The notes beneath the pieces were generated by a model. That model was not told where the DNA came from. It made no database searches and saw only the letters and a program-made list of their open reading frames with translations. Shown here one piece after another: positions 7,529 through 59,418 of a DNA stretch of 64,000 nucleotides. The position numbers and the translations under genes are program-made. The first letter of the stretch is position 1; every line of letters begins with the position of its first letter. Where the stretch lies: the NCBI GenBank assembly GCA_000320545.1, contig ADNK01002144.1:26853-90852 (forward strand). The letters run 5' to 3'. This DNA is from Bigelowiella natans CCMP2755. Taxonomy: Eukaryota > Protista > Cercozoa.

Positions 7529-8240
7529 TCCAGCTCCTCCAATTCATCATGGCCGATTGGCAACATTAAGTACACCAGTTTGTTATTAGTTTCCCACAAC
7601 AAATGGTTTGCATCCTGCAATGCTGAATCCAGAAATACGCATGTAGATATGCTCAGCATGGATGGATTGAGCTAACTAGCTAAGCTGAAATGTAGCATCA
7701 TCGTCGTCAAAATTAGTTCCAAAACACATGAATCACGTGCAGCAAGCTAGGAACAAGGCGTCAGTGAGATTTGCATGACACTGAATGACAAATGAGTTAC
7801 ATGTGCGTGGTGCTGCCATGTTGCAATGACGATGAATGTCCATCGGCCACACATGCATCGCATGCATGTCACACAGCACACCCTAGCATGTGACACGGTG
7901 GGGAACCATGCCACACATGTCTACAGGTAGATGGGGTAGCCAAACGAATGGCATGCTAGCATGCACGAAGATCCAACGGATCGGTAGCGCGTCCCATGGC
8001 ATTTAGTTGTGCGCTGTGCTGCTTGCTGCCTGTGTGATGGACATGAAAGAGTTTTGGGTTATGACATATTGAACTTCACATTTACAAACTACATCGTACG
8101 CATGGACCGGTATCACTTTAGACACAAAATAGGCGTCTGGGTACTGTAGTTGTATAGCAAATTGTCACCATAGCATTCTAGCATTGTTGTTTTCTGCAAC
8201 CATAACCATCCTCATCATTATTTTTCTTTTTCATTATATA

Positions 8241-10040
8241 TCATGCATTTGCATCCTTAAAACCGCATTCTTCAAGATTTTTGTAGCTTTTACGCTTCAT
8301 CAATAACGCGCACTGCGCTAGTCCAGCAAGATAAGACATGGCTGCACACTGGAACTTATCAAGCGATTTTGGGGAATCATCCCAAACGCATATCGTACCC
8401 ACGCAACATTTGTTACCCTTCTCATCATCTACTTGGATAGGAACACCGGCATAGAATCGGACATTATTTCTAGTAACCATTGGGCAATCCGCGAACCGAG
8501 GATCTTTGGTTGCGTCATTCACCACAAAAATTGTGTCTGGGTAGAGAATAGTGTGGGAGCAGAAACTTATGTCACGGGGACTCTCTCGCACTTTTCCGGT
8601 ACCGATTGCCGCCTTGAAAAAGAGCTTTTCTTTTCCCACCAGATTCAACGCTCCAAAACTGGTTTTGCACAGATTAATTGCCAGGCCGACAATGTTATCA
8701 AAAACCTCTTCTGGACTTCGGTCAAGATTGAAGTTTCTCAAGCATGCCAGCCGCTCCTGCTCATTGTGTGCATATGCGGGCGGACGAAATAGAGGCTTAT
8801 TTCTCGGGTCGGGTGACTCCAAGTCAAGTTTTGGATTGCGTATAGCTAGTTTGGGCACCGGGAGTTCTTTGTGTGTTAATGCAACCCTCTTCTTAATATC
8901 TTCTCGCTTCTTCACTGACGACGAACATGAATCTGAAGATAGTGAATCCGACGACGGCCCTCCTAAATCGACTTCTCTTGTTCGATTTTGCTGTTCCTCT
9001 ACCTCGCAAGCAGAACGGATAGCTGCTGCAGCAGCCATCAGTGCTTCAACAAGCTCTGGGGTCCTCCCTAGGTCGCTTCCGCTTACGGAATCTAGGTGTG
9101 ATATCATACCAGGTATTGATAGAAGTTGACTACTGCTGCTTGTATTATGGTGACTATTATGATGTTCTTGTGAGGAGGAACTCGAGTGGTAGCAGCTTTG
9201 CATGTCCTTCCAGCTCCGTTTTTTGGAGTTATTTAACACTTTGCTGGATGCTGAAATCGCTTTCGGCCCTCTGCTAATGCTGGGTTTTCCTTCTTCAATC
9301 TCTTTGTTTTCCTCCCTTTTGTTTCTCGGGATTTTGAACTGCGGGATATTAGGGGCCAGCATGTGCGATCTGCTCCTCCTTACCACAAGTGACGGCGTTA
9401 GAAAAACCTGCACAATCGAATCGTTGATATCTTACTTTAATGAACTATATAAACATTACGAGCAGCTGAAATATGTGGGAGTTTGTAGGTTTTGTTTGAA
9501 AAGGAAGAGGATATACTTCGTGAAGTCCCGAAATGGTAAGCATACCTGTTGGGCAATCTCGATTTGTTTTGAGGTTTGGCACATCACGATTTCGGCAATT
9601 GTCTTACATTTGAAGCACATGAGACACCTTTACACAAAAATAATCACACCATAAGGTTATTTTCTTCACTGTGCTTTTGCGCTCACGTTGCTGTGTGCCT
9701 GTCTTCTCCAATCTTCCATGACACATTCCCTGCAATAACCATTCCTATTGACGCATGCTGTTAGATTAAGTTCCGTCTCGCCAAAACAAAGTTGGAAGAA
9801 CTTGGATTTTTCCAAAATTTGTCACCTTCAAAATGCTGGTGCAGTGCCGGAGATACTTCGACTAGGAAAGTTACCACTCCGAATCTCCTCAACGGCGGAG
9901 TTCCGAATCCCTCACGAACAACTCCGCGAATAAGAGTTTTCATTTTTTTTCGCGATCCATCTGATATATGCGATGCTCAATGGGCGCAGATGTACTTAGA
10001 TTGTGGAATTTATTTGTGTACCTGAGGAGGCCTGGAACAT
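8241..10040 (-). CDS. Protein with disordered Ser-rich middle and C-terminal bacterial-type GAF domain; 5' exons uncertain
   Basis: Last exon (ORF 8241-9413) has NEQERLACL, FDNIVGLA, SFCSHTI, DATKDPRFADCPMV, RFYAGVPI, GTICVWDDSP. Small upstream exons with GT-AG boundaries extend to about 10040; an alternative start near 10187 is possible. Confidence 0.8.
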
Positions 10041-10710
10041 TTTTCTTCCACTCCCTCCTCTCCACTTCGTACTCGAATCTTTTAGGAGTTCTCTTCCTTC
10101 AGGGAGCGAGAAGGCCGATAATGGACCTATTATTGTTGCCGTAATATCAAAAAGGAATACGATTTTTCCAATTTCCCTTGCAGTCATGCCAAATGATCGA
10201 ATTGTTGAGAATTCAGCCTGTAAACTACCAGAGACTAGACCGACGAGCGAGAGACCATAAAAACTATTTTTGTAAGAGTTCCATTTATCTTGCTACGACA
10301 TTGGATGTGCCATGTCGGAGCATGTATAAGAAAGGAAAATTCCAACCAGAACAACTTTTAGCTTGTTTTCATTGGAATTCACTTCTGCGACAGGGCTTAA
10401 AGAGAAGGAAATTTGCGATTCAAATTTGCGGCAGCCGGAGTAATCGCAGCATGGGAGAAAGACCGAATATATTTCAATTTCATGAAAATTGATTTAGATT
10501 ATTGAGTGAGACAGGGAGTAAACCTCATTTGGTAAGAAAATACCTCATCTACGCACTGTGGGTTCGTAGGCTGCCATCCCAAATTTAGGACAGAGGAAGA
10601 AGATCGAAGACACCAACAAGGATACATCAAGTCAGTTATCACCTTTTTCAGAGACTATTTCTTGAACAAATTCGACGAACTCCTGATCTTGATTCCCCCC
10701 AGTTTGACAT

Positions 10711-13700: not shown

Positions 13701-16571
13701 GCCCTTTTCGATAACAAAACTATCAAGCGAAGCACCGACCGTTCTATTATTGTTTATGTGGCACCTACAAAAGCCCTTGTCAATCAGGTATCTGCTGATG
13801 TGTACGCACGTTACGGCATGGTTTTTGGGGTTATGACATTGGATTACAGCGTGAGGCTTAAAGAATGTGAAGTGCTCATTACCATTCCAGAATGCTTGGA
13901 AACGTTATTACTTTCACCAGAAAGTGAAGTCTGGACAAGATGCATCAAGTATGTAGTCTTTGATGAGGTTCACTGTTTGGGAAGCACTGAGAACGGTGCT
14001 GTGTGGGAGCGTCTCCTCAAAATGGTGAGATGTCCCTTCATTGCTTTGTCGGCGACCCTGGGCAACCCTGATGACTTCTCAGAATGGATGGGTAGGATTC
14101 AGCAAACTCACAACAGGAAAATAAATCTCATCATACATCGAACTCGCTGGTCAGACCTGATCAAGTACATGTATCTCCCAAGCGAGCTCCCGCAACTCAC
14201 TGCCTTACAGGGGCAGACTCACGTACTCCCAAGCTTTGAATACGTCCACCCTTGCTCTGCGTTAGGAACTGAACTGGCAAAAACGGGATTTCCTCCGGAC
14301 CTTAACTTTTCCCCAAAAGATTGCATGTTGTTGTACGATGCTATGTTGACCTGCAAGGTTCCGCAAGACGTGCAAAAACGTCTGAGTGACCTCCACCCGC
14401 TCAAATTCTTCAAAGATCTGTTGTACATCAAGAAATACGATGCACAAAAGTTCGAAGCAGCTTTGAAAGATGAATTATATAGATGGTCTGCGAACGGCAT
14501 GAAGAACGAGATACTGGAACTCGTCGGGTTGCTTACCAAAAATTTGGACAAGGGCATTACCAATCTTGAAACATACACTGAAAGGAAGTGCTACGGTGTG
14601 GAATATTTAAAGGAGAATTTCATGCCTCTAATGGTGGACCTTCTCAATGCTGATTACCTACCTGCGGTCGTTTTCAATTTGGACAGGGAGATTTGCGAAG
14701 ACCTTGTTGCATCCATGTTGTTCAAACTTGAGTCGATGGAGGCACAGACTCTGGAAGCTGAAGGTAATAACATTAAAAAAAAGACGAAAGACTACGCAAA
14801 GCAACAAAAGCAGGCAAAACGTGAACGTGATAAGGACAAGAAAAGAAACAAGGACGAAGATGCTGATCCTGGTGATGAGGAAGGAACGGGTCCTGTTGAA
14901 GAAGATCCTATTTACTTCGTCGATCCACGGTTCTCATTTATTGGTAGTGGACAGTCCATGGAATCCGGGGAAATGGAGTGGTGGCTCGATCGTCTTTTGC
15001 GGAAAACAAAATGGCCACGCACTCATCTTCTCATCCGTGCACTTCAGCGTGGTATCGGTGTCCACCACGATGAGCTTGAACGATCATATAAGGATCTCGT
15101 CGAGACTTTGTTTCGCACCAAGCACCTGAAGGTGGTGGTTGCCACTTCAACCTTGGCCCTTGGCGTTAACATGCCTGCAAGAACCACCGTCTTTTGTGGA
15201 GATAGTCCAAATCTCAACCCGTTACGGTACAGACAGATGGCGGGGCGAGCAGGTCGCAGAGGATACGACAATATTGGGAACGTGGTCTTCGTGGGAATTC
15301 CTCCAAAAAAGGTGTACCGTCTCATGACCTCCTCACTCGTCTCCTTGCACGGTCATTTCCCCATGACTCCGACGGTTGCCTTACGTATGGTAAACCACTA
15401 TGGGAAAGTTGCAGCTAAGGCGAATTCGCAGATGACATTAGCCAACATCCTGAAAGAACCCTTCTTCAAGAATCGTGAGGAAATTTCAACCCAGGCTAAA
15501 TTCCACTTCAGATTCTCTCTTCAATACCTTCTTGAGCAGGATCTCATCAAGTATACCCCTGAAAAAGACTTGCAGGTTCATGGGTCTGGTGCGCTCGCAG
15601 TGCATCTTAGATTTGCTCAGCCTGGAAATATCCTATTTGTAAGACTCTGGGACGAAGGGTTATTCGATGAAATTTGTAAGAAGTTCCAAGGAAGAACTGG
15701 CCAACAGGAGATATTGCGCAAGCTGATGCTTGTGATGTCTCACATATTCTTTAGACAGCCCTTACCTGTCGGCACAACAAAAGAATCTCTTGTTAAAGCA
15801 GATTTAGATCCCACAGAAAGCAAGTCTTATGGCATCCTCCCGAAGCTTTCGGAGAAGATCCAAAAAATTATGGACGATCAACGATCGTCTGCACTTCGAC
15901 TTTATTCTTCTTACATCAAGCACTCATGCCTACCAAAACAGGAAGCGCAAGAGCAAGATGAGACTGAATCGCTACCAATATCTTCACTCAAATTGAACAA
16001 TATTGAAGCAGTGCCGACTACATTTCTTGGAAGACTAGCTGCCGCTAGAATTCCTGCCATTGCTCGCAGTGAATATTACCGCATGTCTGGCCATTCTGAT
16101 GATTTCGCATCTTTCTCAGAAATGTGCGACACTGTCAAACCCAATCTTAACATGGATCTTGATGCAATGCCGGCATGTGAAATGAAAGACCACCAACTTC
16201 GAGATATGCCTCTCAATGCTTATGCATCTGATTTCTTCCGACATGGCTCTCTGACTCGCCTTATCAAAGAGAATGGTCTTACATCTGCTAAAGCATGGTA
16301 CCTACTGAAGCAATGGTCATATCTATTGAAAGATATTGCGAAGGGTGTCAAAGAACTCCGAAAACCTACTGATAAGGAGGTTGAGTATGAACACTACTAC
16401 GGGGAAGCTGCTCCTGACAATATGGAGAAGAACGAGACTGTCAAGGCTTTTGTGCAATTAAATTCCCAATTTCAGGAGTTGTTCAGGAATTGGAATAGGA
16501 CACAGACAAATGAAAGGAAGAAAATGGAGGAAATTAAGAAACAGGAAATTCAGAAATTTGAGGAGGATTAA
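10711..16571 (+). CDS. DDX60: DDX60-like Ski2-family DExH RNA helicase
   Basis: 5' exons give the DDX60 N-terminal signature VHGDSVLLDVLSHPLLDWSRGGQILQFFY...IFKVVFFD. The large exon has YRFQLMYAGHLMVR, DDRVSGFYPDKWQRNLLD, APTSSGKT, YVAPTKALVNQ, FDEVH, ALSATLGNP, ATSTLALGVNMPARTTVF and YRQMAGRAGRRGYD. Confidence 0.9.
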
Positions 16572-16914
16572 AACTTCTTTCTTGTACAACAAGTGCACGA
16601 ACCTCGAATTATCCCTTGCAGCCAAAATTATACAATTTTCAATTTCATCCAATCAAAAATATTTGACTTGCTTTAAAATCATCATAGTGATTTTTCTTGC
16701 GATTAGTAGCCCTGTGTGTGCACAAATGCGGACGCTGTGGCCTATCTAGCTATGCATATGAGCATGCTGTGCTGAATAGCATGCTGTGCAATTTGGACAC
16801 ACCGTGCTGCGCGATGCTCACAACTAACTAGCTAGCTCAGTAGCTGGCGCGTGCGCCTATTTTGCCTATTGAATACTCGACGAGCGTGTCCTATCTCTGG
16901 CACGGTACTGCATG

Positions 16915-17029
16915 CTATGAAACGGGCGGGTGCAATGAATATTTTATTAATAAGTTTGAATTTTTCAATTGTCATCCTAATTAGCTAATGCATAGCTGTG
17001 CAAAGCCGCGCTAGCGCGGCTACAGCGCT
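16915..17029 (+). repeat. Conserved dispersed element, copy 1 (convergent spacer)
   Basis: TTTTTCAATTGTCATCCTAAT...TAGCTGTGCAAAGCCGCG...CGGCTACAGCG matches the copies at ~32290, ~46370 and ~58410 (reverse). Confidence 0.8.
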
Positions 17030-17759
17030 TATACGTTGCATGAACTGATTTGTTTGTGTCTGTGTTGTGTCTGCCAGGCTAGCACGATGTCAAGATGCCT
17101 GCTATATGCATGTCATGTGCATGGCATTATTATCATTATCAACGATTGTTGGTTGTGTATGATGCATGCATACATGCTCATTACGTACACACGTTATATT
17201 CGGCCCCTTTTAGCCTTGCGCATGCTAGCATGCCTCGCACGCACATACCTGCGATGCGATGCGCAGCGTCGAGCGGGACCCTGCGCCAAATGCACGCCAT
17301 CTGCTACGATACGTAGAGCCTATGCGCTACTTTAATGCTTGAATTTCTAGGCCAGCTAGCCACAAGCATGGGCACATGTACGAGTCTAGCAGACAATTTA
17401 CAGCCTATGCAATTCCGCGACAGCGACAAGTTACGATGTGCCTAGCAGCTAGCTAGGATACGGCTATGTTGCTTACACGAGCGATCGATGGCGCAGCATT
17501 ACAATAGCTATAAAATGTGGAGGTTGCAGCGCATCACATTATCTAGTCGTGCATGTCGCTAAATAAAGCCCCCCGCGGGCATGCACCTGTAGCCTCATGA
17601 GGGCATGCAATGCAGTGTGGCCATGCTCTGGCGGGAACAAAACACCTGGACACTTCTGCCATATAAGCACTAGCTAGCAGAGACTGTATATACACCTTAC
17701 GCTGTTTTGATGCAGCCAAGATAAAGACATGTCCCATAATTGAATCCCGTTTGATTATT

Positions 17760-20029
17760 GCATTAAAAGACAAGTGAATCCATGAACACAAGTAGATAGC
17801 CTCTGCAACGTTCGAGCATTTATTCGTAGAATATTTTGACCGAGATCAGTGTGGCGCACCGTCATTGCATCTCTTAAAACAAATTACATATGCTGGAAGA
17901 TATGTATTCTAATATGCCGAAAATAAAAAATAGAAGTGGCAGCTCGTACACCAATTCCCATGCCAGCATGGAGTAAGTGATGGCCATTTTCTCTCCTGCG
18001 TTTGCTGCATACGCTGCCTCAACGGTAACTAGCACAGTCATAGGGACGATAATGAGAGCCTGAAACAGTATTCCATTAGCATGACAGCGAAACAAAGTTA
18101 TAATTGAAGTATATTGGCCTATCGTTGCGCAACGTTGCTAGGGATGAACATCCACAACGTGTAAAAATAATATGCAAAATTCATGTGTGGTATCACACTC
18201 CTAAAATGTGTCAAGCAAAGAAGTAGTAATTCAATGAATATCGACCTGGACCCCACAATAAATCGAGATGGCGAGTTTCTTTTCCATACAAGAATAGGCC
18301 CTAATTGTTTGAGGAAGCGCAGCACGCACAAAACAAGCACAACGAATGCCCGAACCATCAAGAGCTTATTCTTATGCCGTGCATGAATGGAATATACAAT
18401 ATAATATGATATACAGTGTACGAAGTCTCATTAAAGATTACTATTTCATATTACCATGCAAATAGGGGCATTATAATAAGCTGAATCAGAAACATTGCTG
18501 GAATGATGCAAGCTGGTATCCTTTAAACAAACCAATGTAGAACACATATTCATATTCAGCGACGCAAATCTACCAATTTGTGTATGTATGACAAATTGAA
18601 TTTAATATAAACATGAACATATTTAAGTGTAACAAAATAATTTTCACCAGAGTTCAGCGTAGTAGTAGTCCTGAGGAGCCACACCAACGTAGCAACTTGA
18701 AGCGGAATTCTGATGGGAAAATCCGAAATATAAAATTTCTACAAACTACGCAAATATACATTTAGAGGGTACATTTCCCGCCTCTGAGAAGTCCTTCAAG
18801 TGTAAGTCGAAGATGGTTGAAACGATAGACAGCATTATTACTCCTAAAATTGCGGGTTGTGGTCGTCTAAATCAGTAAAAGATTCATTAACGAACGAAGA
18901 GGAGAATGAAGTGGAAAGAAGTGATGAGAGTTGCAGTGTAAGTGAGAGAAAAGAGCTATCAGACAAAGAAGATATCTACACCTAATAAGAGATTCAGTAG
19001 AGTTTGGAAAGCGAGTGTTGCCCATGCTGGTGAATCCATTTCTTTTTCTATAAAGCTCCACACAGCCAATATGATGCCAAATATCATTGCGAAACCTAAT
19101 TGCATTTTATTTTTTCGAGATGTAAAGGGAATTGAAAACATTTGTAAGCAAATTGATTTGAAACTATGATCAGTATTGCGTGGATATCATTAGCAATGAG
19201 GAAACAAAACAGACTGAATATATTCTATTACAACCCATGACGAGTCCCGTATACACTTCGTAATAATAGACCTGGCTTCGAAAGTATATTCTGAAAAGAA
19301 TGAGTCATTATTCTTTAAACGCACGATTGGTATTTTCAATTGGAAAAAGAGTGCTACTACATATGAGGTGTGTATTTGTTCCATGCACATATTATTTGCC
19401 TCCCTACATATGCATAATCGTTATTACCCTTCATATCGTCCCATGGATCCTCGAGTGTCATAATAAAATAGGTGAAAGCCTAATAGATTCACTCTGTCGT
19501 CCGCAACTCCATATTTGTAGACGCATCTGAATAATGAGGAGAAGAGATCTGACACCTGTTGAGTACAAATCATCGATGGAATACACTAATTCTGTACTTT
19601 CCGAACTCAAAGAAATGTTGAGGATTCTCTTTTGCTTGAACTTTGCATGCCTAGATACAAAGGAAAATTAGTAAGAGTAATAGCGGATCTCAGGAGACAG
19701 AGTTTTGTTGGGGGAACGTGTATTTTGCATCACCTCGCATATCTCTTTAGACGAATAGTGGTCTTGTATCGCATCTTGACGCTAAAAATATGCATCTGTT
19801 TTATTTAATCCTCCTCCTTAGTTACTTCTAAGTTTATACTCAACCTTTCCTGCTTCCATGTTCAGAAACGTGAAAAGTATTATCTATGTAGAAGAAGCAG
19901 CAAAATTTCAGCGTATGTCTTACTCAAACCCAATTAGCTACTTACGATTCTGACAACATTTGCAACTGCATATGGTAATGATAGCGTTGGCCATAGCCTG
20001 AAGGTGATTGGAACATCCTCATCCTCCAT
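17760..20029 (-). CDS. Multi-exon multi-pass membrane protein of unknown function (3' end approximate)
   Basis: Start MEDEDVPITFRLWPTLSLPYAVANVVRI|gtaagt at 20029. Hydrophobic exons include QLGFAMIFGIILAVWSF, WATLAFQTLLNLLLG, LMVRAFVVLVLCVL and ALIIVPMTVLVTV, with GT-AG introns. Confidence 0.6.
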
Positions 20030-21765: not shown

Positions 21766-21805
<40 letters not shown>

Positions 21806-25453: not shown

Positions 25454-26161
25454 GGATGATGAGGATGATGAGGATGATGATGAGGCTGCTTTCGTGGTTC
25501 TTGCTCTCCTGAGTCATGCTTACATATTTTTCATCTTTGTCCAGGATCGTTCGATGCGCATGAAGCCTACCAAACGTCGTGAATTGGGATCGAAACCAAG
25601 AAAGAGCTGTGCCGATAATTTGGTGATTGCAGTCATATTTAGCCATGTATTTCTAATAAAAATGATGATGAGGTAGTGTCGGTGAGCTCCTGCTTACTAC
25701 TGGTATTTGTTGTCAGGTTGTAGGATCTTCCGACTTGGAATCAACGGACGACATGTTCCACACGTGAGGAGTCAACAAAACGTGCATCATCGTACAAAGC
25801 GCTACTTTCATAGATTGTTATAGGCGAAGAAAGGGGGTTGCGGATAGCGTGCTGCTCATTTTGAATTCTTACAAACATCATTTCGTCCTCCGCCTCACCA
25901 TATTTGTCCATCCATCACAGGCCACCTGGTCAGACCGTTGTACAGCTCGCAGAAGGCGAAGCTTCTATTCCTTGCATGAATTGCGGATTCAATATGACAT
26001 CTGTTGAAATCGCGAGTAGCACTCAAGCTGGAGAAGGCCCCTATACAAATTGGACGCGAGACGTTCAAGAAAGGGGATATTCTATTTTGCGGTGTGAAAT
26101 GTGCGGCACCGCACACCAGGAGTACCAAGGCCAACCAGCGCATAATTTCTTTCGCAAATGA
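20502..26161 (+). CDS. Large many-exon protein of unknown function ending in a CxxC...CxxC zinc-ribbon (start approximate)
   Basis: Short open exons bounded by AG/GT between microsatellite-filled introns (e.g. AEKLGGGTPRSQSSPSILDNLIMAHREK, IKLGMLSLNLLSMLYNVFFELK). Last exon: IPCMNCGFNM...ILRCEMCGTAHQEY...FFRK*. Confidence 0.55.
21230..25490. repeat. Cluster of mostly intronic microsatellites (ATT, AGT, GAT, TTC, GAA, AT)n
   Basis: Examples: (AGT)n ~21750-21805, (TTC)n ~23400-23438, (AT)n ~24738-24770, (GAT)n ~25419-25482. Confidence 0.9.
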
Positions 26162-26728
26162 AAGCGAAGCCATTGCAACTTGCGTGTATGTTTTGTGCGT
26201 TTGGGACGTCGTGGTTATTGTAAACATGTTAATTCACGTTTAGATGAGTGCTAGCACCGCTGTAATTGGGTCCCATTATGGTGCATGATAGCTGCTATTA
26301 ATGTAATGACTTGTACCACGTGTGCAAAGCGACAGATTGCCCACCGAGCAACTATTGCAGCTTATTGCATCAAGACATCTAGACATTGCACGTTGTTCCC
26401 TTTATATCATATTGTCGAGCATGCATTGTACGTCGCCATGTGTGAGTAGAAAAGTATGAACATAAATTTTAGACGAGAGCACGGCCATACGTCGATGTCG
26501 CCAATGCGCTTGCGTGGCGCTGTAATACTGAGGCCTATAATCAGTGTTAGCTCGCCAAAGTTAATTTTTCTTCACGGATAAACGCTATCCTTAATCATCG
26601 GACAATAATCTCAATTTTCACTAATGAATCTTATTAGCATTCGCGCTTAACTCTTCTTTCGGAACATGCGATACGACTCATCTCATATTATGCATATCAA
26701 ACTGCTAAGCGCTCCTCGAATTCTAACT

Positions 26729-28419
26729 TCATTTTGACTCCTCCACGCTGTTTGCTTGGGTGCCAATAAAGCATCCCATTAGAATAAGCAATCCACCGAA
26801 AACCTCATTGCTTGACATCGTCTCTGAGAGTAGAAGAGAGCCAAAAATTGCCGCCCACAAAGGTTCGGTGCCTATTATGACGGAACTTTCGCTAGCTGGG
26901 ACCTGGGAGTAAGGAAAGATAGAATACGTGCTTATTGACTACTGCTGGCGTGATTTAATAAACAATGCCAGCACCTCTTTCAGAGCAACATTGGTGATAT
27001 AAACCGTGAGTGCCGTGGACAGTAGCCCCGTATGTAGGAGTGCAATAAGCGAATCTAAATAATCGGAGAGAGACTGCTCGATATAGAGATGATGGGTGAG
27101 AAGAGAGCATATTAACTACTTACATGGTTCTTGCAGAAAGGACAAAGCAATCGTTTCTTGTCCATTGCCATAGTGCATGCTAATTGCCCATATAAGGGAT
27201 ACGATTGCAGTGACCTGGACCTGATACGCCATTGTATAAGTTTGTGTGTTTACATAAATTGTGTTTTATTTGAAGTAAGTAGAGATAGATAAACAGCACC
27301 TGGATCGCAGAAAGAGCTTTTTCAGACCCTGTTGGCAATCGTCTTAGGTATTCTTCGATACGTACATATGATATTCCGAAGCTCAACGGTTGGAAGAAGC
27401 ATATGAGATCGTTGATGTCCTAACAAGCATCATTTCTCAGTGCTACTACCATATAACAACAAACGTGAATGGTTGTTTTCCCAACTTACAGGGGGGCCAA
27501 GTTGGCTTTCCGGTGAGTACTCCAGAAACGCTATTCCAAAGAGCGAAAAAAATGCAGCGCTCAGCAATTTCATGGAGATTTTCTTCCCAAACAGAATCTC
27601 GATGAGAGGCACCACGATAACCTGGACCCAGATTTTACATGTTAGTCAAAGAGGATGATTTAAGATAGCGGTATATAGGAAGGAAGAATTGCCTGCAGAC
27701 TACAAATGAAAGCAGCCTTATTCGAGGAGACGCTCTGCAAAGAGATGGCTTGGGTCACATATCCGAGAGATATCCAAAGGCCTATCTCAGCGCCAGCTAA
27801 CCTTACCTCCCTAAATTAACCAAATAAGAAGCATATCTGCGAACCAATTCAGTGTTGTTTACAGTCGTCTAGGTAATAATACTTGGTAGTTTCTCGGGAG
27901 AATGGAGTAAGGGCCAGCCCAGCGATCAGGAAACGCAATAAACAAACGATATCCGGAGTCTGAATATTGGGAAATATAATAACCCTTTTTGTCGTCATCA
28001 TTATCTTCTTCTTCTTCTTCTTCTTCTTCATCATCATCATTATCATTATCATCATCACTGAGTAGTCCTAATTAAAATGCTGCTACTAACCATGTGTCCC
28101 TGATTCAGGAGGTATTTGACGCTTGGAAAGTTCGTTCCCCACAGAAGAGCCACAAGAAGCAGCAGCCCTCTTTGTCTATAGTAGTCCCTACAATTGAAAG
28201 CAGCAGCGTGTTGTTTGCAGCAGCAGGCCAACACATTAGGATGGTGATGACGATGATGACGGCGGTGGTTCTATAATCATATTTTTTTCTAGAGGCAAGT
28301 AGCATTAGTATCACCTTTGAGTGACACTAGTTGACTTATCGAGTTGGTCTGTTGTCACTAGGTCATCTCCAACTGTTTCCACAGAAGAGATGTTGTCACC
28401 AAACTCCGAGTTGTTTGAC

Positions 28420-28456: not shown

Positions 28457-28952
28457 GTGACGATTTGCTGTAAAAGACCCTAAACTTTGGTCTGCTTTGG
28501 GTAGTAAGATGAAACGACGTCACGAAGGGGGGAAATTGACTGCTCTCTTTGAAAAGTGCAGATGGTCCATATTCCGCATTGCGAGATCTTGTAGAACTTT
28601 GCAACGTAGAGGAGGAGGAGGAGGAGGAGGAGGAGGAGGAGGAACGCATCGAGGGTTGGTGCTCCTTAAGTAGCACTTTCTTATTTAAATATGGTATACT
28701 TCCGTCTCCAATGAGAGACTGTATTTGCCCTTTTGATGCAGATACCGTGCCGTCGCGAGTCAGATCACAAGAAGGCGAAGCAGCTCTTCTCGTTCTAAAA
28801 CTTGAGATTTGGCTTTTTCTGGAGAGATATCTGTAGGATGGTTTCGCTAGGAGAAGGGAAAGAGCAATCAGGTTCAAACAACATATCCGAGGAGTATATT
28901 GTCTGCAGCAGGTAGGTCCCGGTTCGCCTGCCTTTTTGCGCCAGTCGATCAT
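26729..28952 (-). CDS. EamA/DMT-family transporter with bipartite (signal + transit-peptide-like) N-terminal leader
   Basis: Spliced exons give LLLVALLWGTNFPSVK, LLRFLIAGLALTPF, EIGLWISLGYVTQAISLQSVSSNKAAFICSLQVIVVPL, HTGLLSTALT, VPASESSVIIGTEPLWAAIFG, EVFGGLLILMGC...EESK*. The first exon has hydrophobic CCLNLIALSLLLA followed by an R/S-rich segment. Confidence 0.88.
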
Positions 28953-29315
28953 GTTCCTACTCCACCTCCTTCTCCTCTTCCTCCTCCTCCTCTGCTAACA
29001 TACGTAACCATGGATTATGACGATCAGCGCGGGACAGTAGAGCAATTAGGTAATATTACCGTATAAAATCGTCCTGGCACTGTTTATTATTAAAAGGGAG
29101 CCGTTTTATCCCTACGTCTAAGAACATATCGTTATTTTTTATAAGATATCACCGAAGATCTACGCATCGTTACAGCTGGTGGCGGGTGTGTGGTAGTTAC
29201 TGGTTACCAAGTAGTAACGACAAGCCAACAACACAACAAAGAGGAGGAGGACGAGAAGGAGGCGGAGAGCAGAGGACGAAGAAGAAGAAGAAGCCAGAAA
29301 GAAGCTGTTGCCGCT

Positions 29316-38070: not shown

Positions 38071-38899
38071 TCTTAAAGAGAGCAGGCCAAATATCTTTGT
38101 TTGCAAAACAGATTTTGGGTTTCATTGAGCAGTCCTTAGACAACAGAGGTTTGTATTTGTGTAAATAAATATGTAGCATAGTAGAAGCCTTGGAGAATGT
38201 ACATACTTGAGAGCAGTACACTATAACTAAACATGTGCACGTTAGCCGCGCTAAGCGTATCAATGACGAAGTAATGCTGACTGTCTCAACTATTCTAAAT
38301 TCGTCTCCATTAAGGATCATGACTGCGCGCGCAGCTGAGCACATCCAGACGTCGATTATATGAGCAGTACGCCACAGCTAGACAGCAATGCGTTCAGGGC
38401 AGCATAGTGCATCATCGCACAGCATTGCATGTTACATAGTTGTAGCTAGCTAGCTAGGCGCATATATGTTTTCCAACGCTAGAACGTGCTAGCGTGAGAA
38501 GCAGCAGTTCATCGAAGCAATTCATGGGTGTAGTGCGCTAGTGCGTTACTATAGCGTAATGAAGACGCCATTGTCACACTGAGAAGTCATTTAGCTCCCA
38601 CATGTGTATAGGGACATATATGTCCATACATATATATGTGTACGTAGACTTAGGAAGTTTCGAACATGTACGTTTACGTGCGAAGCAAGCAAAAGCAAAC
38701 CGGAAGCAAATAATATGGATAAATCTCACTACAATGAATTGACCTTGCTAGCTTGCCATGGGCAAGGCAGTTTACTTTGTTCATGTCAATGTCAACTTTT
38801 CTCTCATGGACATTTCGATGAATAAAAAAACACGGTTAATGCCTGTAGTCATTAGGCGTTATCATTTTTCAACACACTAGCATATAGCACACCTAATCC

Positions 38900-39302
38900 A
38901 TGGAAGCACCATGATGTGAACAAACGAGTTGACAGTACATGTGGAGGCTTCTAGGAATTTCTCTCATATCTTGTGTCCACCACTATGATACTACTCCTGC
39001 AAGACTGACACATTTGTCCAGAGTCTTCAGAAATACCTAAAAGTAAACCAGAAGGAACATCGTTAAATTCAGAGATAGATATTAGTAACAATCATTTAAT
39101 AGAGTAATCATGGCGTAGAATGAATTCCGTTTTTAATTTATATATTACGTGTCTCAGCTCGTCTCGAACCTCACTTGCAAATGCTTGGGTCTGACCTGAA
39201 ATATCATAAAGCTCTAGTAACCCTAGGGTATCTTTTTTGCGGCATTTTTCGTTGTCACTCTTTCCTTATTCTGATCTAAGTTGCAGCTCTCTCTCCCTCC
39301 CC

Positions 39303-43911: not shown

Positions 43912-43945
<34 letters not shown>

Positions 43946-46096: not shown

Positions 46097-46363
46097 TGTG
46101 GCAAGTGATTTTCGTGAAGGTGCGCTCATACTTAAATTTAGCCAGCATCGCGTGCAATGTATGTGGCAAGGCAGAAACGCACCTGTTATTCAGCTAATAA
46201 GTAATTGATGCAAAGCATGCTATGCGACGTACAGAGCAATCGTGCAATAGCGAATGAGTTTGAATATTATAATATATCTATTCCTCCCAACTAGCCAACA
46301 GTGGAAATGATTATTTCTAGATTTAGTTATGAATAATGACACGACATGCGCACATGTGTTAAG

Positions 46364-46444
46364 TATGTGAGACGGATATAATGAAATGTTTAAATTTTTT
46401 CAATGGTCATCCTAATGTAGCTGTGCAGTGCAGCGGCTACAGCG
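46364..46444 (+). repeat. Conserved dispersed element, copy 3 (convergent spacer)
   Basis: TATGTGAGACGGATATAATGAAATGTTTAAATTTTTTCAATGGTCATCCTAATGTAGCTGTGCAGTGCAGCGGCTACAGCG. Confidence 0.85.
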
Positions 46445-46903
46445 TGTTAAGTATGTGGAAATAGATCATGACTAGAATGCTAAATCGGGCAGCTGGGCAG
46501 CTCCAGCTAGCCCACAGCCAAACGCCATAGATATATGACATGCCGCGCAGTCTTCGCTGACGTCGGACGCATAGACGGAAAAGTTTAGGTATATACAGCA
46601 GTGTAGCACAATAAGTAGAATGATGCATGATGACATGTACAGCACATGCGCTGATGCTCATATCTAGATATCTAGAGCTACACCCGCATGACTGCATGCA
46701 AATAATACAATGCCGACTAGCATGTATGAAGAAAATTTAGCTTCTTTAACTAAACTAACGACGTTACTTGCACAACAACACATGCATACACCGATAACGA
46801 GATCTAGTCTCCATCTAGCCATACTGTCATGAAAGAAGATTTCATCTTGCTTTGTTAACATCATCGAATGAACCACGATGTTGAATGTGGCACAACACTT
46901 GAA

Positions 46904-49055: not shown

Positions 49056-49092
<37 letters not shown>

Positions 49093-52212: not shown

Positions 52213-52263
<51 letters not shown>

Positions 52264-55200
52264 AACAATACGTGTTATTACTTCCAAACCGTACAGAAGA
52301 ATCAAGAAAAGATCCTACATGCTCTAGCAATGTACGTGTCTATTGCTCATGTGTATGCATGTGCTGTCCTATGCGTGCAGCAGCATCTTAAGCCAATCGA
52401 CGACATGTTGTGTAAGCATGCTAGAAGTGCTCTAATTTGGAGAAGACAAGATCGTTTTCTGTTATGAGTTATACTCTTTTTTCACGGCGAGAAGGTGCTC
52501 TGACAACACTAAGCATGGAACAGATTGACGTCAGTGGTGGAGGACCATCATCAACTTGCCACAGAAAGGAAGAGGGACGCGAACATCTCAGCATGCAAGT
52601 ATTCTTGACTGATCACTACGTTGTAATCTTGAAGATGATACGATTGTTGGAGACTTGCAGTAATGTCTTCGTGTAATTATTGCGCTACAAGTACATCATC
52701 ATCATCATGATTATTTCAGGTAGCTGTACTTAAAGCGATGAGAAAAGGGCAACGTACCATCTTGAAAAACAGAGAAAATGAACTGATGATGAGGGGAAAC
52801 AAGATCTCTGAATTGGAGGATCAAGTGGCTGCTTTGGAAGCGAAAATTGAACGGTTTATTTCAAGTGATTTATTATAGATTGTCGAATCATGATGGTATG
52901 ATATTCTATTCTTTCCCTAACAAATAGATCTTTGGTGAGCACTAGAATACATATGAAAGAAGCTGATGAACAACGAAGGTAGGTCACGATGATCCGGTGT
53001 CAGTTTTTTACTGCTGCTCTATCTCCCTCTTTCCCTCTCCCCTTCACATTCGTGGTGTTGGTCAGTTGCTGTATTTTAGATAATAATCCTACTTTTACTA
53101 GAATGATAACGAGCCTGAAGAAGAAAAATGCGGAGCTCCAACGCAGATCTGTTATGGAAGCTGCTGGTGGTGGTGGTGCTGCTGCCTCTGCTACTGCTGA
53201 TCCCGCAAATAATGCAGCAAAGGCACAAAAGGATAAGGAAGATGCTATACTGAAAGCTGATCAAGAGAAAAAAGAAGCTTTGGCGAAGGCGGAGAGAGAT
53301 AAAACAGAAGCATTGCAGAAAGCTGATCAAGAGAAGAAAGAAGCTTTGACGAAGGCGGAGAGAGATAAAACAGAAGCATTGCAGAATGCAGCAACAAAAG
53401 CACAAAAGGATAGGGAAGATGCTCTGCTAAAAGCCGATCAAGAGAAGAAAGAAGCTTTGGCGAAGGCGGGGAGAGATAAAACAGAAGCATTGCAGAATGC
53501 AGCAACAAAAGCACAAAAAGATAAGAAAGATGCTCTGCTGAAAGCTGATCAAGAGAAAGAAGAAGCGTTGGCGAAGGCGGAGAAAGATAAAACAGAAGCA
53601 TTGCAGAAAGCAGCAGCAAAAGCGAATAAGGATAAGGAAGATGCTCTGCTGAAAGCTGATCAAGAGAAGAAAGAAGCTTTGGCGAAGGCGGAGAGAGATA
53701 AAACAGAAGCTTTGCAGAATGCAGCAACAAAAGCACAAAAAGATAAGAAAGATGCTCTGCTGAAAGCTGATCAAGAGAAAAAAGAAGCGTTGGCGAAGGC
53801 GGAGAGAGATAAAACAGAAGCATTGCAGAATGCAGCAGCAAAAGCGAATAAGGATAAGGAAGATGCTCTGCTGAAAGCTGATCAAGAGAAGAAAGAAGCG
53901 TTGGCAAAGGCGGAGAGAGATAAAACAGAAGCATTGCAGAATACAGCAGCAAAAGCGAATAAGGATAAGGAAGATGCTCTGCTGAAAGCTGATCAAGAGA
54001 AAAAAGAAGCGTTGGCGAAGGCGGAGAAAGATAAAACAGAAGCATTGCAGAATGCAGCAGCAAAAGCACAAAAGGATAGGGAAGATGCTTTGCGTAAAGC
54101 TGATCAAGAGAAAAAAGAAGCGTTGGCGAAGGCGGAGAGAGATAAAACAGAAGCATTGCAGAATGCAGCAGCAAACGCACAAAAAGATAAGAAAGATGCT
54201 CTGCTGAAAGCTGATCAAGAGAAAGAAGAAGCGTTGGCGAAGGCGGAGAGAGATAAAACAGAAGCATTGCAGAATGCAGCAGCAAAAGCACAAAAGGATA
54301 GGGAAGATGCTCTGCTGAAAGCTGATCAAGAGAACAAAGAAGCTTTGGCGAAGGCGGAGAGAGATAAAACAGAAGCATTGCAGAAAGCTGATCAAGAGAA
54401 GAAAGAAGCTTTGGCGAAGGCGGAGAGAGATAAAGCAGAAGCATTGCAGAATGCAGCAACAAAAGCACAAAAAGATAAGAAAGATGTTCTGCTGAAAGCT
54501 GATCAAGAGAACAAAGAAGCGTTGGCGAAGGCGGAGAAAGATAAAACAGAAGCATTGCAGAATGCAGCAGCAAAAGCGAATAAGGATAAGGAAGATGCTC
54601 TGCTGAAAGCTGATCAAGAGAAGAAAGAAGCGTTGGCAAAGGCGGAGAGAGATAAAACAGAAGCATTGCAGAATACAGCAGCAAAAGCACAAGAAGAAGC
54701 GTTGGCGAAGGCGGAGAAAGATAAAACAGAAGTATTGCAGAACGCAACAGCAAAAGCACAAAAGGATAAGGAAGACGCTCTGCTAAAAGCTGATCAAGAG
54801 AAGAAAGAAGCCTTGAAGAAGGCGGAGAGAGATAAAACAGAAGCATTGCAGAAAGCAGCAGCAAACGCACAAAAAGATAAGGAAGATGCTCTGCTGAAAG
54901 CTGATCAAGAGAAGAAAGAAGCTTTGGCGAAGGCGGAGAAAGATAAAACAGAAGCATTGCAGAAAGCTGATCAAGAGAAGAAAGAAGCTTTGGCGAAGGC
55001 GGAGAGAGATAAAACAGAAGCTTTGCAGAATGCAGCAACAAAAGCACAAAAAGATAAGAAAGATGCTCTGCTGAAAGCTGATCAAGAGAAAAAAGAAGCG
55101 TTGGCGAAGGCGGAGAGAGATAAAACAGAAGCATTGCAGAATGCAGCAGCAAAAGCGAATAAGGATAAGGAAGATGCTCTGCTGAAAGCTGATCAAGAGA

Positions 55201-57662
55201 ACAAAGAAGCGTTAGCGAGGGCGGAGAGAGATAAAACAGAAGCATTGCAGAATACAGCAGCAAAAGCGAATAAGGATAAGGAAGATGCTCTGCTGAAAGC
55301 TGATCAAGAGAAGAAAGAAGCGTTGGCGAAGGCGGAGCGAGATAAGACTGAAGCGCTACAAAAAGCAGAAGAAGGTTTGAATAAAAAGGAAGAAGCATTA
55401 CACCAAATGCTCAAGGAAAAAGAAGAAGCTATTTCATCATTACAAAAACATGTAGATCATAGTAGGAAGGTTGCTGCTGATGAAAAGCGAAGCTTAATTG
55501 AGAAGCATGAAGAGGAAATAAGTCGTCGAGAGCTGCAGCTACAATCTCTTAAAGTTACTCATGAAGAAGAAATGGAAAAATTGAAACACAGCACTGAACA
55601 GCAGAAAATGGAAAGTATAAGAGTGGAAGTGCTACGAAGAGAAGAGGAAATGAAAAATGAACTTTTGAATAAAATGAAGAAGTATAGAGAAGCTCAAGCT
55701 GCCTCGATTGCCAGTTTGAGGAGCAGCCATCAATTGCAGTTGAATAAGATCGAACAAGAATCAAAAAGAAAGCATGAAGAAGCTCTTCGTATTGCTAAAA
55801 AGGATAATAACATTGCCTTGAAACAGGCGATACAACAAGCTACTGTTTCTGAGCGTGCCCATCAAGCTGCCAGGATGAAAGTTCAAATGGAAAAAAAGGC
55901 CGCACTGTTTGATGCTAAAACTGGAGAGGCTGTTGATGCTGCTATTAAGCAAAACAAGGAGCAGCATTTCAGGGAAATTAGTGCTCTCAAATGTGAGCAT
56001 GAGCGAACAGAAGCTGAATTGCAGAAGACAAACTCCAGTCTTAGCAAAGAGTTAGCTCAGTGCAGAGCGCAATTGGAGAAAGCATCAAAGGCCAAGGCCA
56101 AGGCGAGTGAGGTGATGAAAAGTACGCGGAGTATGTGCGACACAATAGAAAACCTAAAAAAAGGTTTGGATTCGGAAAGGGAAAAGCTAAAAGTCAAGCA
56201 AATTGAGATCCGACGAAAGCATAGAGCAACTGTATCTGGACTGGAAGAGCAGCTACATGAAATGAACAATCGATTTTCTAACGAACGAAAAGCAAGAGAA
56301 AGACTCGAAAACCACGTCAACAGACTTGAAAGTATGCTGAGCATGTATAACGATAATGGAAATCGTAAGAGTGCAGCAGCAGCTACTGTACCAGCATCAT
56401 CATCACTATTATCGCTGTTTTCTTCTGCTTCTTTTACTAGTACTAATGTTCCGCCCCCCTCTTCTTCATCTTCCCAACCCCAACAAGTACTGCAGCAGAA
56501 GCAGCAGACAAAGTTGGACGCATCCCAACACAGTTCCAGTGGTAGAAGTAGCAACAACCATCTTCACTTTAAAAACACATTATGGGAGCTTGGAGAGAAG
56601 AACAGAAGTTTGCTGATTCAAAATACAAGTTTGAAGCAAAAGATTCATAAGTACTCACGCCTCATTGCAAGTCAATCCCAAAGGGAAATTGAGCGAACGG
56701 AAAGAGAGCAAAATGAAAGCAAGGGCCAACAAGATAGAGTTAGTATGCACACAAGCATGAGAGCCCCTCCACCACCTACCAAAAAGACGGGGAGGGCAAT
56801 GGATGACAGACTGGAGATGCATAAAATGTCGGCAAAATGGCGTCATGAGGAAAATCTGAAGTTACAACAGCAAATACAGGACATGGATCATCACCACGCT
56901 CTAAACGTTAGAAGTCTTAAAGACAGACACAGATCTATGTTAGAGGCAACGCGTTCAGACTACCAGATGCGAATTGAAGCTCTTGAGTCGACGGTAAAGA
57001 CACTGAGAAACGATAGCCAAAAGAAATTTGAGCGTTTGCGCGGCGAAAAGGATGCACAAGTAGCTGAGGTTAAGAAGGCTCTCTACTTGGTGGAAAAGGA
57101 TAGAGACGAGCTGTTTACTTCTTTACGTTCATTACAAGAGATGAAACGAGACATAGAAGACGACGATGAGCAATCACTGGTTAATGAGAAACCATTGAGT
57201 GATGATAGAGGGTGCAAGGTGCGAAACGAAGAAAATGAAGACGGAAAGCGTCAGAAGCAGATTGTCGACGACGCTGGCCATAATGATGATAGCGACAAAT
57301 TTGTTAGTACCGAAGCCTTTCCTCGGGTCGCGGTTACTACCTCGCAAATGTACAAACTTAAATCAAAAATCAAAACTGCGTTCAACAACTACTTACAAAA
57401 TTCTAGTTCAGCTTCATGTTATCCAGATGTCATTAAAGCAATAAAGGCAGGCCTGGAAGAGACTGGATTCCCTTCCTCAGATGCTAACTGGTTGGAAACT
57501 GCAGTTGAAAAAAAAATAGCTAACTTAGAGCAACAAAGGAATGATTCGAGATTGACGCTACGGGATCAGAAAGCGTACACCTTAAGCCAGATCAAAGGAA
57601 GCATTCAGGTATTGTTGCATGAAAGAACTTCCTTCATCGCAGAAGATAGAACTCATGATTAG
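50651..57662 (+). CDS. PH-domain protein with very long coiled coil containing a 37-aa tandem repeat
   Basis: 5' exons KSGVVYLKPP, PRRFVVVTDHLIEVYRDQ and KWSFFTETHLESLEWVTAV (PH-like). The large last exon (ORF 52989-57662) is E/K/A/Q-rich coiled coil. Confidence 0.75.
53208..55370 (+). repeat. Coding minisatellite, 111-bp / 37-aa unit with shorter 22-aa variants, about 20 copies
   Basis: KAQKDKEDALL-KADQEKKEALA-KAERDKTEALQ-NAAA repeated with high DNA identity. Confidence 0.95.
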
Positions 57663-58408
57663 GTGACACCATGCATGTAAAAGCATTCACGTTGTGTTGA
57701 ATCGGATCTTTTCAATTGTCAGATGCGATGTCTAGATGTCATCAACGCACAACTATGATCATGTCGTGCAGCATCCAGCAAGTGCCGTACGCACATCGCT
57801 AGCTAGCTAGGCATGCTAGCATGTTGCGTGCACTGAATGCTGATGTCATCTGCATCGTCACATTGTCTGTCACAGCAGTGCCCGTCGGTCTACACGTTTG
57901 CATGTTGTGACGTGTCGTGCGGCGGATTGAAATTCGCAGGAGTTGTCGCTAGCTTTGAATGCGTAAATTGCTCACTAAATTGATTCTGTAAATTTGGAAG
58001 ATGATGAATTGAAAAATAAGAGTCACACGCAGAGACGTGCTAGCGTGTGTCTCTTTTTCTAGTGTTTGACGTGCGCGCAACGGCACAAGCTTGCCGCTTT
58101 CCATGTGATCAGCTGCTGCGTCTGCTTGCATGGCTTGTCATTGTAAGCACATCTAGATCGACATGCGATCGCCATCGCCGGCGGCGCTCGCGAGCAAGAT
58201 GAGGGCAAACACACATATGCACACGACTGCTACTAGATACAGTGCATGGGACGGATGCAATGAGCAGCAATGATCAATTCTAGTATTGCATTCGTCTAGC
58301 TAGCTAGTCCGATCTAGCTAGCTATGACAATGATCATCTCGCTACTGTGTCGCAACAATGAGCTAGCTAGCTAGCTAGCTGGAAACTATAACCAACAGAT
58401 TCAACATT

Positions 58409-58541
58409 AGCGCTGTAGCCGCGAGTATAGCGCTGCATTGCACACAGCTCTAGAGCCACATGACTAGCATCAATGAGGATGACCGCATTATTGACGACGA
58501 ACAAATTTAATTTGATTTATTATACTGTTCCGTCTTACATA
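58409..58541 (-). repeat. Conserved dispersed element, copy 4, inverted and with insertions (convergent spacer)
   Basis: Reverse complement reads TATGTAAGACGGA..TATAATAAATCAAATTAAATTT...GGTCATCCTCAT...AGCTGTGTGCAATGCAGCG...CGGCTACAGCG. Confidence 0.75.
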
Positions 58542-59418
58542 TAGCTAGATAGCTGGGCAAAAGCAGCGGCCATTGCACTTAAATTATGTTATCCATCTCA
58601 TGCATAGCTAGATTCGATAGCGGCGTTCATGCGCACATTTCTAGACTTGCACCAGTCAGTAGTGCAGACATCGTAAGCATTTCAGCGTTAACGCGCAGGG
58701 GTACAACCAGAAGTTGTGTGGGATTTTAGCTAATACTGTTCAAGTTGTTTGAAGAGAAAACTTATTCACAACAAGCTGACTGCTTCAATATATTAAAACT
58801 AGATATGAAATGTCTGCTATTTTCAAATTATCTAAATCATCTGCAAAATAATTTCGTCAAGAAGCGGTTTGGGTTAAATTGTGTACATCCAGATGCATCG
58901 GGAGCCAGTGAAATGGTGGTATGGTGATAGCGATAGAGGTGCAGATTTTGATGCATCAGAAGCCAATCAAAGGGCTTTAGTATGGCATTGTGACAGAGAT
59001 AGAGGTGCAGATTTAGACGGTAAGAGTAGCACTGAACAAATGCATATCTTCGATTTTTTTCCTTTTCATAATGACGATTGAACTTTCTTGTTCTTTGTTT
59101 TGACTTTAAGCGGGGGAGGCATGAGGTGAGGTGAAAGACCCCCATGCATTCTTATGTTTTTAGCAAGAATTATGAACAAATGCTAGGGATTCCAACACCG
59201 AGGGTAGGGTTTAGTGTTTGGATTGTAATATGCTTTTAATGTTTATTTCCCTTCAAGAGGATATTGCACACAACGAGCGATGAATGAGGAGAGGCAGTGG
59301 AAGGTTTGTTGCGTTTTGGTGTAACTAGGACGTAATGGAAGCTTGCATGTGAATGAGGATGAGTAGGGATTTCTAGGTGCAGCTTGACCCCTCGTGGATC
59401 GTGAAATTTGGCTTTCAC

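Follow-up and report, generated by a model that had tools for sequence, protein, structure and literature searches.

A TpA-dependent transition bias and stereotyped CTAG insertion scars in patches of alternating purine/pyrimidine DNA of Bigelowiella natans

The base J mark of kinetoplastids, the Vsr/Dcm system of Escherichia coli and fungal repeat-induced point mutation (RIP) are the known systems to which the DNA described here is most readily compared. Base J has been reported in Leishmania beside telomere repeats and between genes (PMC4344527). A passage of PMC4687349, citing Bhagwat and McClelland 1992, credits Vsr repair in E. coli with the change of CTAG to CCAG or CTGG. We have analysed a 64-kb stretch of a 91.4-Mb Bigelowiella natans assembly (contig C1593:26853-90852; this whole stretch is called the window), in which an original prediction had singled out eight tail-to-tail spacers as rich in CATG, TGCA, CACA/TGTG and (CTAG)n and depleted of TpA by a local TpA>CpA/TpG process. 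All results derive from this one assembly, from exact-word counts made genome-wide and from a 178-kb genome sample that includes, beside the window, 104 kb fetched from further contigs. We consider it probable that the best overall account joins three elements: a single class of DNA, a set of insertion scars written into it, and a patchy transition bias at TpA.

The B. natans trait has something in common with each of these systems. As with Vsr/Dcm, CTAG goes to CCAG or CTGG in a context-dependent manner and transitions dominate. Unlike E. coli, B. natans is a eukaryote in whose genome no Vsr domain was found by search; it loses TpA in all contexts and not just in those resembling CTWGG, the effect is regional rather than genome-wide, and C>T at CpA is not suppressed. 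As with base J, some of the affected DNA adjoins telomere repeats, at both arrays sampled, and some sits between genes, and the step concerned contains a thymine and is symmetric on both strands. Base J, however, is a mark, whereas the B. natans trait is known here from its mutational footprint alone. The comparison with base J further differs in that only a minority of the convergent-type tracts is affected, that the genes are not in polycistronic units, and that a six-frame search of B. natans found no JBP/TET domain, a weak negative. Fungal RIP is similar in being a regional set of dinucleotide-specific transitions able to strip a domain of one dinucleotide, but it makes TpA from CpA, which is the opposite change, and it needs duplicated DNA, whereas the B. 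natans domains are single-copy. What is new here is the TpA-dependent transition bias, its patchiness and the TpA-free DNA of the subtelomeres; we found no description in the literature of a regional, TpA-specific T>C process.

The evidence begins with the CTAG words. In the window, 30 of 177 CTAG (17%) are flanked on both sides by the same 4-nt word, the words themselves being diverse, compared to about 1% for other centre words. Among all 256 possible centres, CTAG is the sole non-microsatellite with matching 4-nt flanks. This arrangement, which we call a scar, is a fixed-length target duplication around constant terminal bases, as in a cut-and-paste footprint. The eight tracts make up 10.3% of the window and hold 29 of its 30 scars; the only perfect scar elsewhere, GTCA-CTAG-GTCA at 28354, lies in a 227-aa minus-strand open reading frame (ORF), and about one is expected by chance. 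The 178-kb sample contains 95 scars, with 65 of these on contigs outside the window, and genome-wide there are 3,828 copies of CATGCTAGCATG against 7 of the reversed control word. The target is symmetric, with A or C at position 1 in 87% and G or T at position 4 in 87% (M-N-N-K), CATG being the commonest, and there is a mild preference for C before and G after the 4-bp target. Such a symmetric preference constrains the enzyme that makes the staggered cut. In short, a stereotyped 8-bp insertion, consisting of CTAG and a duplicated 4-bp target, has been written many times into this DNA.

Scars of this kind resemble the excision footprints of Tc1/mariner-type elements in their constant centre, two target copies of fixed length, symmetric preference and abundance, but the duplication is of a variable 4-bp word and not of TA, and the footprint is unusually uniform. 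The likeness covers only the CTAG part of the tracts, and a search of 178 kb for a parent element with CT...AG inverted ends, termini of 9 nt or longer and a duplicated 4-bp target found none, its four matches being microsatellite or chance. Bare 4-bp tandem duplications of the kind left by topoisomerase-II-like fill-in were also considered and rejected, as they show no general excess and are confined to (CTAG)n and (CATG)n. The (CTAG)n arrays are supplied by insertion scars and are not explained by the TpA process. Recognisable scars occupy 7% of tract bases, and masking them leaves the densities of CATG, TGCA, CACA, GCGC and ACGT unchanged, so the scars explain CTAG, AGCT and GCTAGC but not the remaining words.

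As the starting state of a scar is known, its variants give the direction of substitution. We therefore counted variants of CATG-CTAG-CATG as exact words across the genome. Beside the 3,828 intact copies, transitions of the central TpA account for 505 CCAG and 508 CTGG (1,013 in total, or about 506 per variant), compared to 62 TTAG and 65 CTAA for the outer transitions of the centre (about 64 per variant). The four inner transversions sum to 224 (about 56 per variant) and the four outer ones to 118 (about 30 per variant), a ratio of about 1.9. Changes of A>G and T>C in the arms, away from TpA, were found 88 and 81 times (about 85 per variant). Transitions at TpA are hence 8 times as frequent as the outer transitions, 9 times as frequent as the inner transversions, and 6 times as frequent as same-type transitions in the arms. 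The double conversion, CCGG, occurs 9 times where about 67 would be expected under independence. This 7-fold rarity indicates that the second change needs the TpA that the first change destroyed. Reversed-word controls for the scar variants gave 1-11 copies. GCCAGC is not commoner than GCAAGC in tract DNA, showing that the excess of CCAG and CTGG does not come from the word background. A second arm word replicates the result, with 2,111 copies of CTTG-CYRG-CTTG compared to 1,888 of CTTG-YTAR-CTTG; among the first 100 listed matches to the former, the centres are CTAG in 88, CCAG in 6, CTGG in 5 and CCGG in 1. The commonest ordinary change in the arms is C>T at CpA (139 copies of TATG-CTAG-CATG and 124 of CATG-CTAG-CATA), and scars of the TATG type, an alternative source of these variants, number only 299.

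Converted scars also co-locate with DNA that lacks TpA. We define a TpA-free run as at least 180 bp without any TpA other than in CTAG. In the 178-kb sample, CCAG or CTGG words with matching arms stand out only inside such runs, where 4 of 56 are perfect and at least two of the four arm positions match in 57%, compared to a background of 30%. Outside the runs, 7 of 845 are perfect, which equals the background, even though 78% of the intact CTAG scars lie there. Double scars were found 249 times, and among the first 50 listed, 29 have both centres intact, 12 are mixed, 8 have both converted (about 4 expected) and 1 contains CCGG. As four of the eight both-converted pairs carry one CCAG and one CTGG, these are not duplications of a unit. 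The direction TpA>CpA/TpG that had been proposed is therefore supported by the scar spectrum, the rarity of CCGG, the second arm word and the co-location with TpA-free runs. There is a TpA-dependent transition bias on this DNA, namely T>C on either strand, and it requires an intact TpA. The scars indicate a loss of about 26% of TpA against a gain of about 3% per CpA or TpG, which would lead to an equilibrium TpA observed/expected ratio (O/E) of about 0.3. Most tracts lie far above this value and the purged runs far below it, so the rate must differ strongly between domains.

The distribution of TpA itself shows how uneven the process is. A depletion shared by all eight tracts, as first proposed, is not what we see: for their length the tracts contain 1.06 times as much TpA as expected, and the median TpA O/E is 0.86 compared to 0.70 in other 250-bp windows. 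With CTAG set aside, the ratio ranges over 0.53-0.90 in seven tracts but falls to 0.03 in tract 5, next to 0.80 in other non-ORF DNA and 0.54 in long ORFs. The hand counts given earlier for three sub-tracts are correct, yet these are the three most TpA-poor stretches: 7680-8040 has 12 TpA where 22 are expected, with 10 in CTA/TAG context; 35190-35875 has none where 35 are expected; and 57720-57960 has 9 where 14 are expected, with 6 in CTAG. The purged domain that overlaps tract 5 extends over 34822-35875 (1,054 bp), where nine CTAG and one GTAG provide the sole TpA, and there is none at all in 35187-35876. At the TpA density of the window, the probability of finding no TpA in 690 bp is about 1e-19. 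The block is single-copy in the 91-Mb genome, and its longest ORF (179 aa) has no Pfam or Atlas relative. It begins straight after the TAA at 34819-34821 that closes a plus-strand open frame; in general, stop codons do not mark the edges of TpA-free runs.

Across the 178-kb sample, TpA-free runs sum to 8.2 kb and are found at scar tracts and beside telomere arrays. Contigs C3736 (positions 1-63) and C3600 (1-258) open with (CCCTAA)n telomere arrays, and runs of 1,584 bp and 586 bp, respectively, adjoin them. Each array is followed by degenerate units (CCCTGA, CCCCAA, CCCTCA) and then by a common subtelomeric element of about 90 bp, all of it TpA-free. The two subtelomeres are not fully independent, as they have these approximately 90 bp in common, which is too little for a paralogue test. 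The confinement to gene-convergence zones that had been inferred from the window does not hold, since both sampled subtelomeres are TpA-free. TpA-free DNA has a CpA/TpG O/E of 1.67 and a G+C content of 0.50 (0.41 elsewhere), with ApT at 0.97 and ApA/TpT at 1.15. A signature of the WA type produced by polymerase eta can be put aside, as ApA is undepleted in this DNA. Overall, the bias is patchy: some domains have lost all TpA save that in young CTAG scars, and most tracts keep a normal TpA content.

What the eight tracts do share is alternating purine/pyrimidine DNA, not loss of TpA. In a 250-bp profile of the window, the eight spacers of the original prediction appear as eight and only eight blocks of such composition, the word model behind the profile having been trained on the eight tracts themselves; the alternating fraction of purines and pyrimidines, a measure independent of that model, distinguishes them with an area under the curve of 0.91. 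The word richness that had been described was confirmed, with CATG, TGCA and CACA/TGTG enriched 1.9-2.7-fold. The tracts hold 78 of the 177 CTAG in the window, 28 of 31 GCTAGC, 97 of 347 CATG, 87 of 414 TGCA and 118 of 612 CACA/TGTG, with binomial p values of 1e-10 to 1e-30 for the enrichments. Their dinucleotide O/E values are 1.46 for CpA/TpG, 1.69 for GpC, 1.22 for ApT and 0.56 for CpC/GpG. Among tetramers, YRYR/RYRY is enriched 1.85-fold and RRRR stands at 0.4 times. CpG is indeed plentiful, at 0.98 compared to 0.79 elsewhere. For comparison, the window as a whole has a G+C content of 42.3% and O/E values of 0.74 for TpA, 1.15-1.19 for CpA/TpG and 0.82 for CpG, which are ordinary for the whole genome. 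The process was correctly set apart from the decay of 5-methylcytosine at CpG, with CpG at 0.98 in the tracts and 0.82 in TpA-free DNA against 0.79-0.81 elsewhere, and from RIP, since the scar spectrum runs in the opposite direction and the DNA concerned exists in a single copy. Long alternating runs exceed the number predicted from dinucleotide content by a factor of only about 1.6, so that no microsatellite origin need be invoked. The skew of CA versus TG between left and right halves of the tracts is inconsistent and gives no sign of strand or transcription asymmetry. Tract 2 is single-copy in the 91-Mb assembly except for about 90 bp of low complexity. The eight spacers thus form one single-copy class of alternating B. 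natans DNA in which CA/TG, GpC and ApT abound and purine runs are scarce.

The tail-to-tail placement of these spacers was borne out in part. ORFs with Pfam domains end at both edges of tract 1, at the left edge of tracts 2, 4 and 6 and at the right edge of tract 3, and at the left edge of tract 8 a long ORF lacking any Pfam match comes to its end. Pfam comparison of 30 tract-flanking ORFs resolved the EamA exon alone.

To see how much of the composition could follow from conversion, we simulated the random change of every TpA in ordinary non-ORF DNA to CpA or TpG. Per kb, the simulated DNA contains 10.9 CATG, 11.0 TGCA and 23.0 CACA plus TGTG at a G+C content of 0.48, while the pool of TpA-free DNA contains 11.3, 18.5 and 20.5, respectively, at 0.50, and tetramer frequencies correlate with r = 0.56. 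Conversion would therefore account for much of the CATG and CACA/TGTG richness and for part of the TGCA richness in purged domains, with the CTAG richness coming from scars. The remaining alternation signature (GCGC, CGCG, ACGT and the loss of purine runs) would be a separate property. As seven tracts keep their TpA, the idea of TpA>CpA/TpG conversion accounts for the purged domains and not for the whole class.

Several observations weigh against the joint account of class, scars and bias. TGCA, GCGC, CGCG and ACGT all exceed the conversion prediction, and the GCAC excess and the loss of purine runs lie outside it in the same way. Seven of eight tracts are rich in CA/TG yet have kept TpA. The spectrum predicts a TpA O/E of about 0.3 rather than zero, so the TpA-free runs need a much stronger local rate, or selection. 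Over the whole 178-kb sample, X-CCAG-X and X-CTGG-X sum to 11, with about 8 expected by chance. Telomere-like units in the subtelomeres include the transversion CCCTCA 6 times, compared to 7 for CCCTGA and 5 for CCCCAA. Substitutions were polarised within scars only, using exact-word counts from a single assembly, and CCAG and CTGG centres could be primary products of insertion, made by unequal element ends or error-prone gap filling; that idea is countered only by the scarcity of CCGG centres and by the overlap of converted scars with TpA-free DNA, the latter counting four perfect cases. Finally, a six-frame, exon-by-exon search of the 91-Mb assembly for Tet_JBP (PF12851) returned no match at E<=0.001, a weak negative in an intron-rich genome where 0 of 14 controls matched.

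The scar spectrum nonetheless points to an undescribed local mutation or DNA-marking process. As a mechanism, we tentatively propose a lesion, at a confidence well below even. The T at TpA, or its partner A, would be enzymatically modified or damaged inside a special chromatin domain; the altered base would mispair to give T>C and would less often be excised, giving transversions. A lesion fits better than a repair bias because the inner transversions are mildly raised (1.9-fold), and the unsuppressed C>T at CpA likewise favours a lesion over a repair bias. C5 DNA methyltransferases are encoded in the genome. The best match, which scores 262 bits, is a full-length domain (profile positions 1-320) at C1391:110667-111599 in an uninterrupted 649-aa frame, which is unusual for an intron-rich genome; this gene may be bacterial-type or recently acquired.

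Among the alternatives to the joint account, one would dispense with any special mutation: alternating DNA would be selected (for termination, as a boundary or as Z-DNA-prone sequence) and would exclude TpA, with CCAG and CTGG scars arising directly as insertion products. We regard this as unlikely, if somewhat less so than the other alternatives. Most tracts are rich in CA/TG, GpC and ApT without loss of TpA, TA conversion yields neither the excess of GCGC, CGCG and ACGT nor the loss of purine runs, the telomere-like units of the subtelomeres have lost TA by transversion too, and the whole sample has only a small excess of CCAG-type scars. Selection against TA should, however, raise transversions that destroy it as much as transitions, and we see increases of 1.9-fold and 8-fold, respectively. 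Variable element ends would predict about 67 CCGG centres, compared to the 9 found, and, with 78% of CTAG scars located elsewhere, the CCAG-type scars still lie in TpA-free runs. To keep 0.7-1.6 kb clear of TpA would also demand strong selection at every site.

A base-J-like system is, in our estimate, a little less likely again. In this case a thymine hydroxylase would mark T at TpA in subtelomeres and in a subset of convergence zones, and the mark or an oxidised by-product would mispair with G. By analogy with kinetoplastids, B. natans would then mark its subtelomeres and some gene-end spacers with a modified thymine or adenine at TpA, and a by-product of the mark would erase the TpA. In favour of this, TpA-free DNA is found beside telomere arrays and in inter-gene tracts, the substitution is TpA-dependent and strand-symmetric (505 versus 508), and transversions at the same bases are mildly raised. 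On the other hand, Tet_JBP was not found in the genome search, which is a weak objection since no control matched, we found no paper linking Bigelowiella with JBP/TET or with hydroxymethyluracil in its own DNA, and seven of the eight convergent-type tracts in the window are unpurged. If true, B. natans would have a counterpart of kinetoplastid base J or of dinoflagellate hydroxymethyluracil that either arose independently or is of ancient shared origin.

We give lower odds to a repair bias of the very short patch (VSP) type, in which T:G mismatches at CpA/TpG would always be repaired to C:G, perhaps protecting methylated CpA or CWG, so that TpA would slowly be rewritten. The net change of CTAG to CCAG or CTGG is indeed the one seen (1,013 compared to 3,828 intact, with 30-85 per variant for other single changes), C5 DNA methyltransferases are encoded, and transitions dominate. 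Vsr (PF03852) is nevertheless without a candidate in the genome under a search that matched 3 control genomes, an unrelated eukaryotic T:G glycosylase being possible. Furthermore, C>T at CpA should be suppressed and is instead the commonest ordinary arm change (139 and 124), and the approximately 1.9-fold rise in transversions at the same T/A is not predicted by a T:G repair bias.

GC-biased gene conversion seems improbable, as does error-prone repair synthesis at hot spots of recombination or breakage, where the breaks would also leave the CTAG scars. The many insertion scars in the tracts would reflect frequent breaks, TpA-free runs are GC-richer (0.50 compared to 0.41), and subtelomeres are often recombination-active. 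Against this, W>S transversions have no advantage (among the matches listed, CGAG is outnumbered by CAAG), S>W keeps pace with S>S (ATAG and GTAG being about equally common among the matches listed), ApT (0.97) and ApA/TpT (1.15) are undepleted in TpA-free DNA, and the second hit is blocked by context (9 CCGG).

That the composition of the tracts was simply passed down from a known transposon or repeat family is very improbable. For all that the CTAG scars resemble excision footprints with their constant centre and fixed 4-bp duplication, neither tract 2 nor the TpA-free block has a second copy in 91 Mb save for about 90 bp of low complexity, masking the scars (7% of tract bases) leaves the CATG/TGCA/CACA density unchanged, and no element combining CT...AG ends and inverted termini with a 4-bp duplication was found in 178 kb. 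This was the circumstance that the original prediction had itself named as fatal, and for the bulk of the tract it is contradicted by the single-copy state and the scar masking.

The individual tracts illustrate the range of states within the class. Tract 1 (7530-8240) lies between a plus-strand amine-oxidase (LSD1-like) ORF ending at 7528 and a minus-strand GAF-domain ORF ending at 8241; it has perfect scars at 7672, 7952 and 8174, a TpA-poor core at 7680-8040, a CA/TG O/E of 1.71 and a non-CTAG TpA O/E of 0.64. Tract 2 (16570-17760), downstream of a plus-strand DEAD/Helicase_C gene whose ORF ends at 16571, has scars at 16742, 17007 and 17221, undepleted TpA (0.88) and a GpC O/E of 2.0. The right edge of tract 3 (26160-26730) abuts the stop of a minus-strand EamA-type transporter exon (26732-26938), and the tract has one scar, at 26375, and a TpA value of 0.90. 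Tract 4 (32060-32790) follows a plus-strand EF-hand/ankyrin gene with an ORF ending at 32058; it contains four CTAG and no perfect scar, with CA/TG at 1.51 and TpA at 0.63. Tract 5 (34820-35560), the sole tract purged of TpA (0.03; GC 0.54), carries scars at 34869, 34985, 35062 and 35181 as well as candidate converted scars, GGAA-CCAG-GGAA at 35128 and AGCA-CTGG-AGCA at 35227. A further candidate, CCTT-CCAG-CCTT at 35578, lies 18 bp past the end of the tract but within the TpA-free domain. Tract 6 (38070-38900), downstream of a plus-strand ammonium transporter gene with an ORF ending at 38070, has six scars between 38374 and 38744 and undepleted TpA (0.90). Tract 7 (46100-46900) has scars at 46287, 46313, 46660 and 46811 and a TpA value of 0.87. 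Tract 8 (57660-58700) has 25 CTAG and a TpA value of 0.53, with a TpA-poor core at 57720-57960; (CTAG)n arrays at 57799, 58296 and 58363 are among its eight scars. The tract lies downstream of a plus-strand 1,557-aa ORF ending at 57662. This ORF (52989-57662) is purine-rich (66% purine on the plus strand) and of low complexity, without a Pfam match, and antisense open frames of up to 721 aa are found within the same region.

The genes of the window are intron-rich and eukaryotic, and Pfam identifies a DEAD-box helicase, an EF-hand/ankyrin protein, an ammonium transporter, an amine oxidase and a GAF-domain protein. Scanning the same 64 kb with Rfam and for tRNAs gave no matches, a codon-usage model trained on its long ORFs could not separate exons, and counts of splice sites and purine skew in the window gave no strand signal. 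Elsewhere in the sample contigs, DNA outside the tracts repeatedly contains near-identical compound microsatellites of the form (TA)n(TG)n with GCATA at their end, and a direct-repeat scan showed a period-11 repeat (AGCATTG.../GCATTGC...). Contig C3736 ends, at about 28,800-28,985, with a (GTT)n-like tract, then (TTAG)n and finally a long and apparently perfect hairpin palindrome around cgcgcccttgacttac / gtcaagggcgcg.

The CTAG scars provide an internal clock with a known ancestral state, turning an oddity of composition into a measurable spectrum that can be used genome-wide. If a T>C process of this kind acts at TpA, mapped domains of this culturable alga should contain a base at TpA that is modified or damaged to an unusual degree. 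Few mutation processes are both regional and context-specific (CpG decay, RIP, VSP repair and AID/APOBEC clusters), and each of them has led to an enzyme system. A TpA-specific T>C process acting in subtelomeres and in some inter-gene tracts would be a new entry among them.

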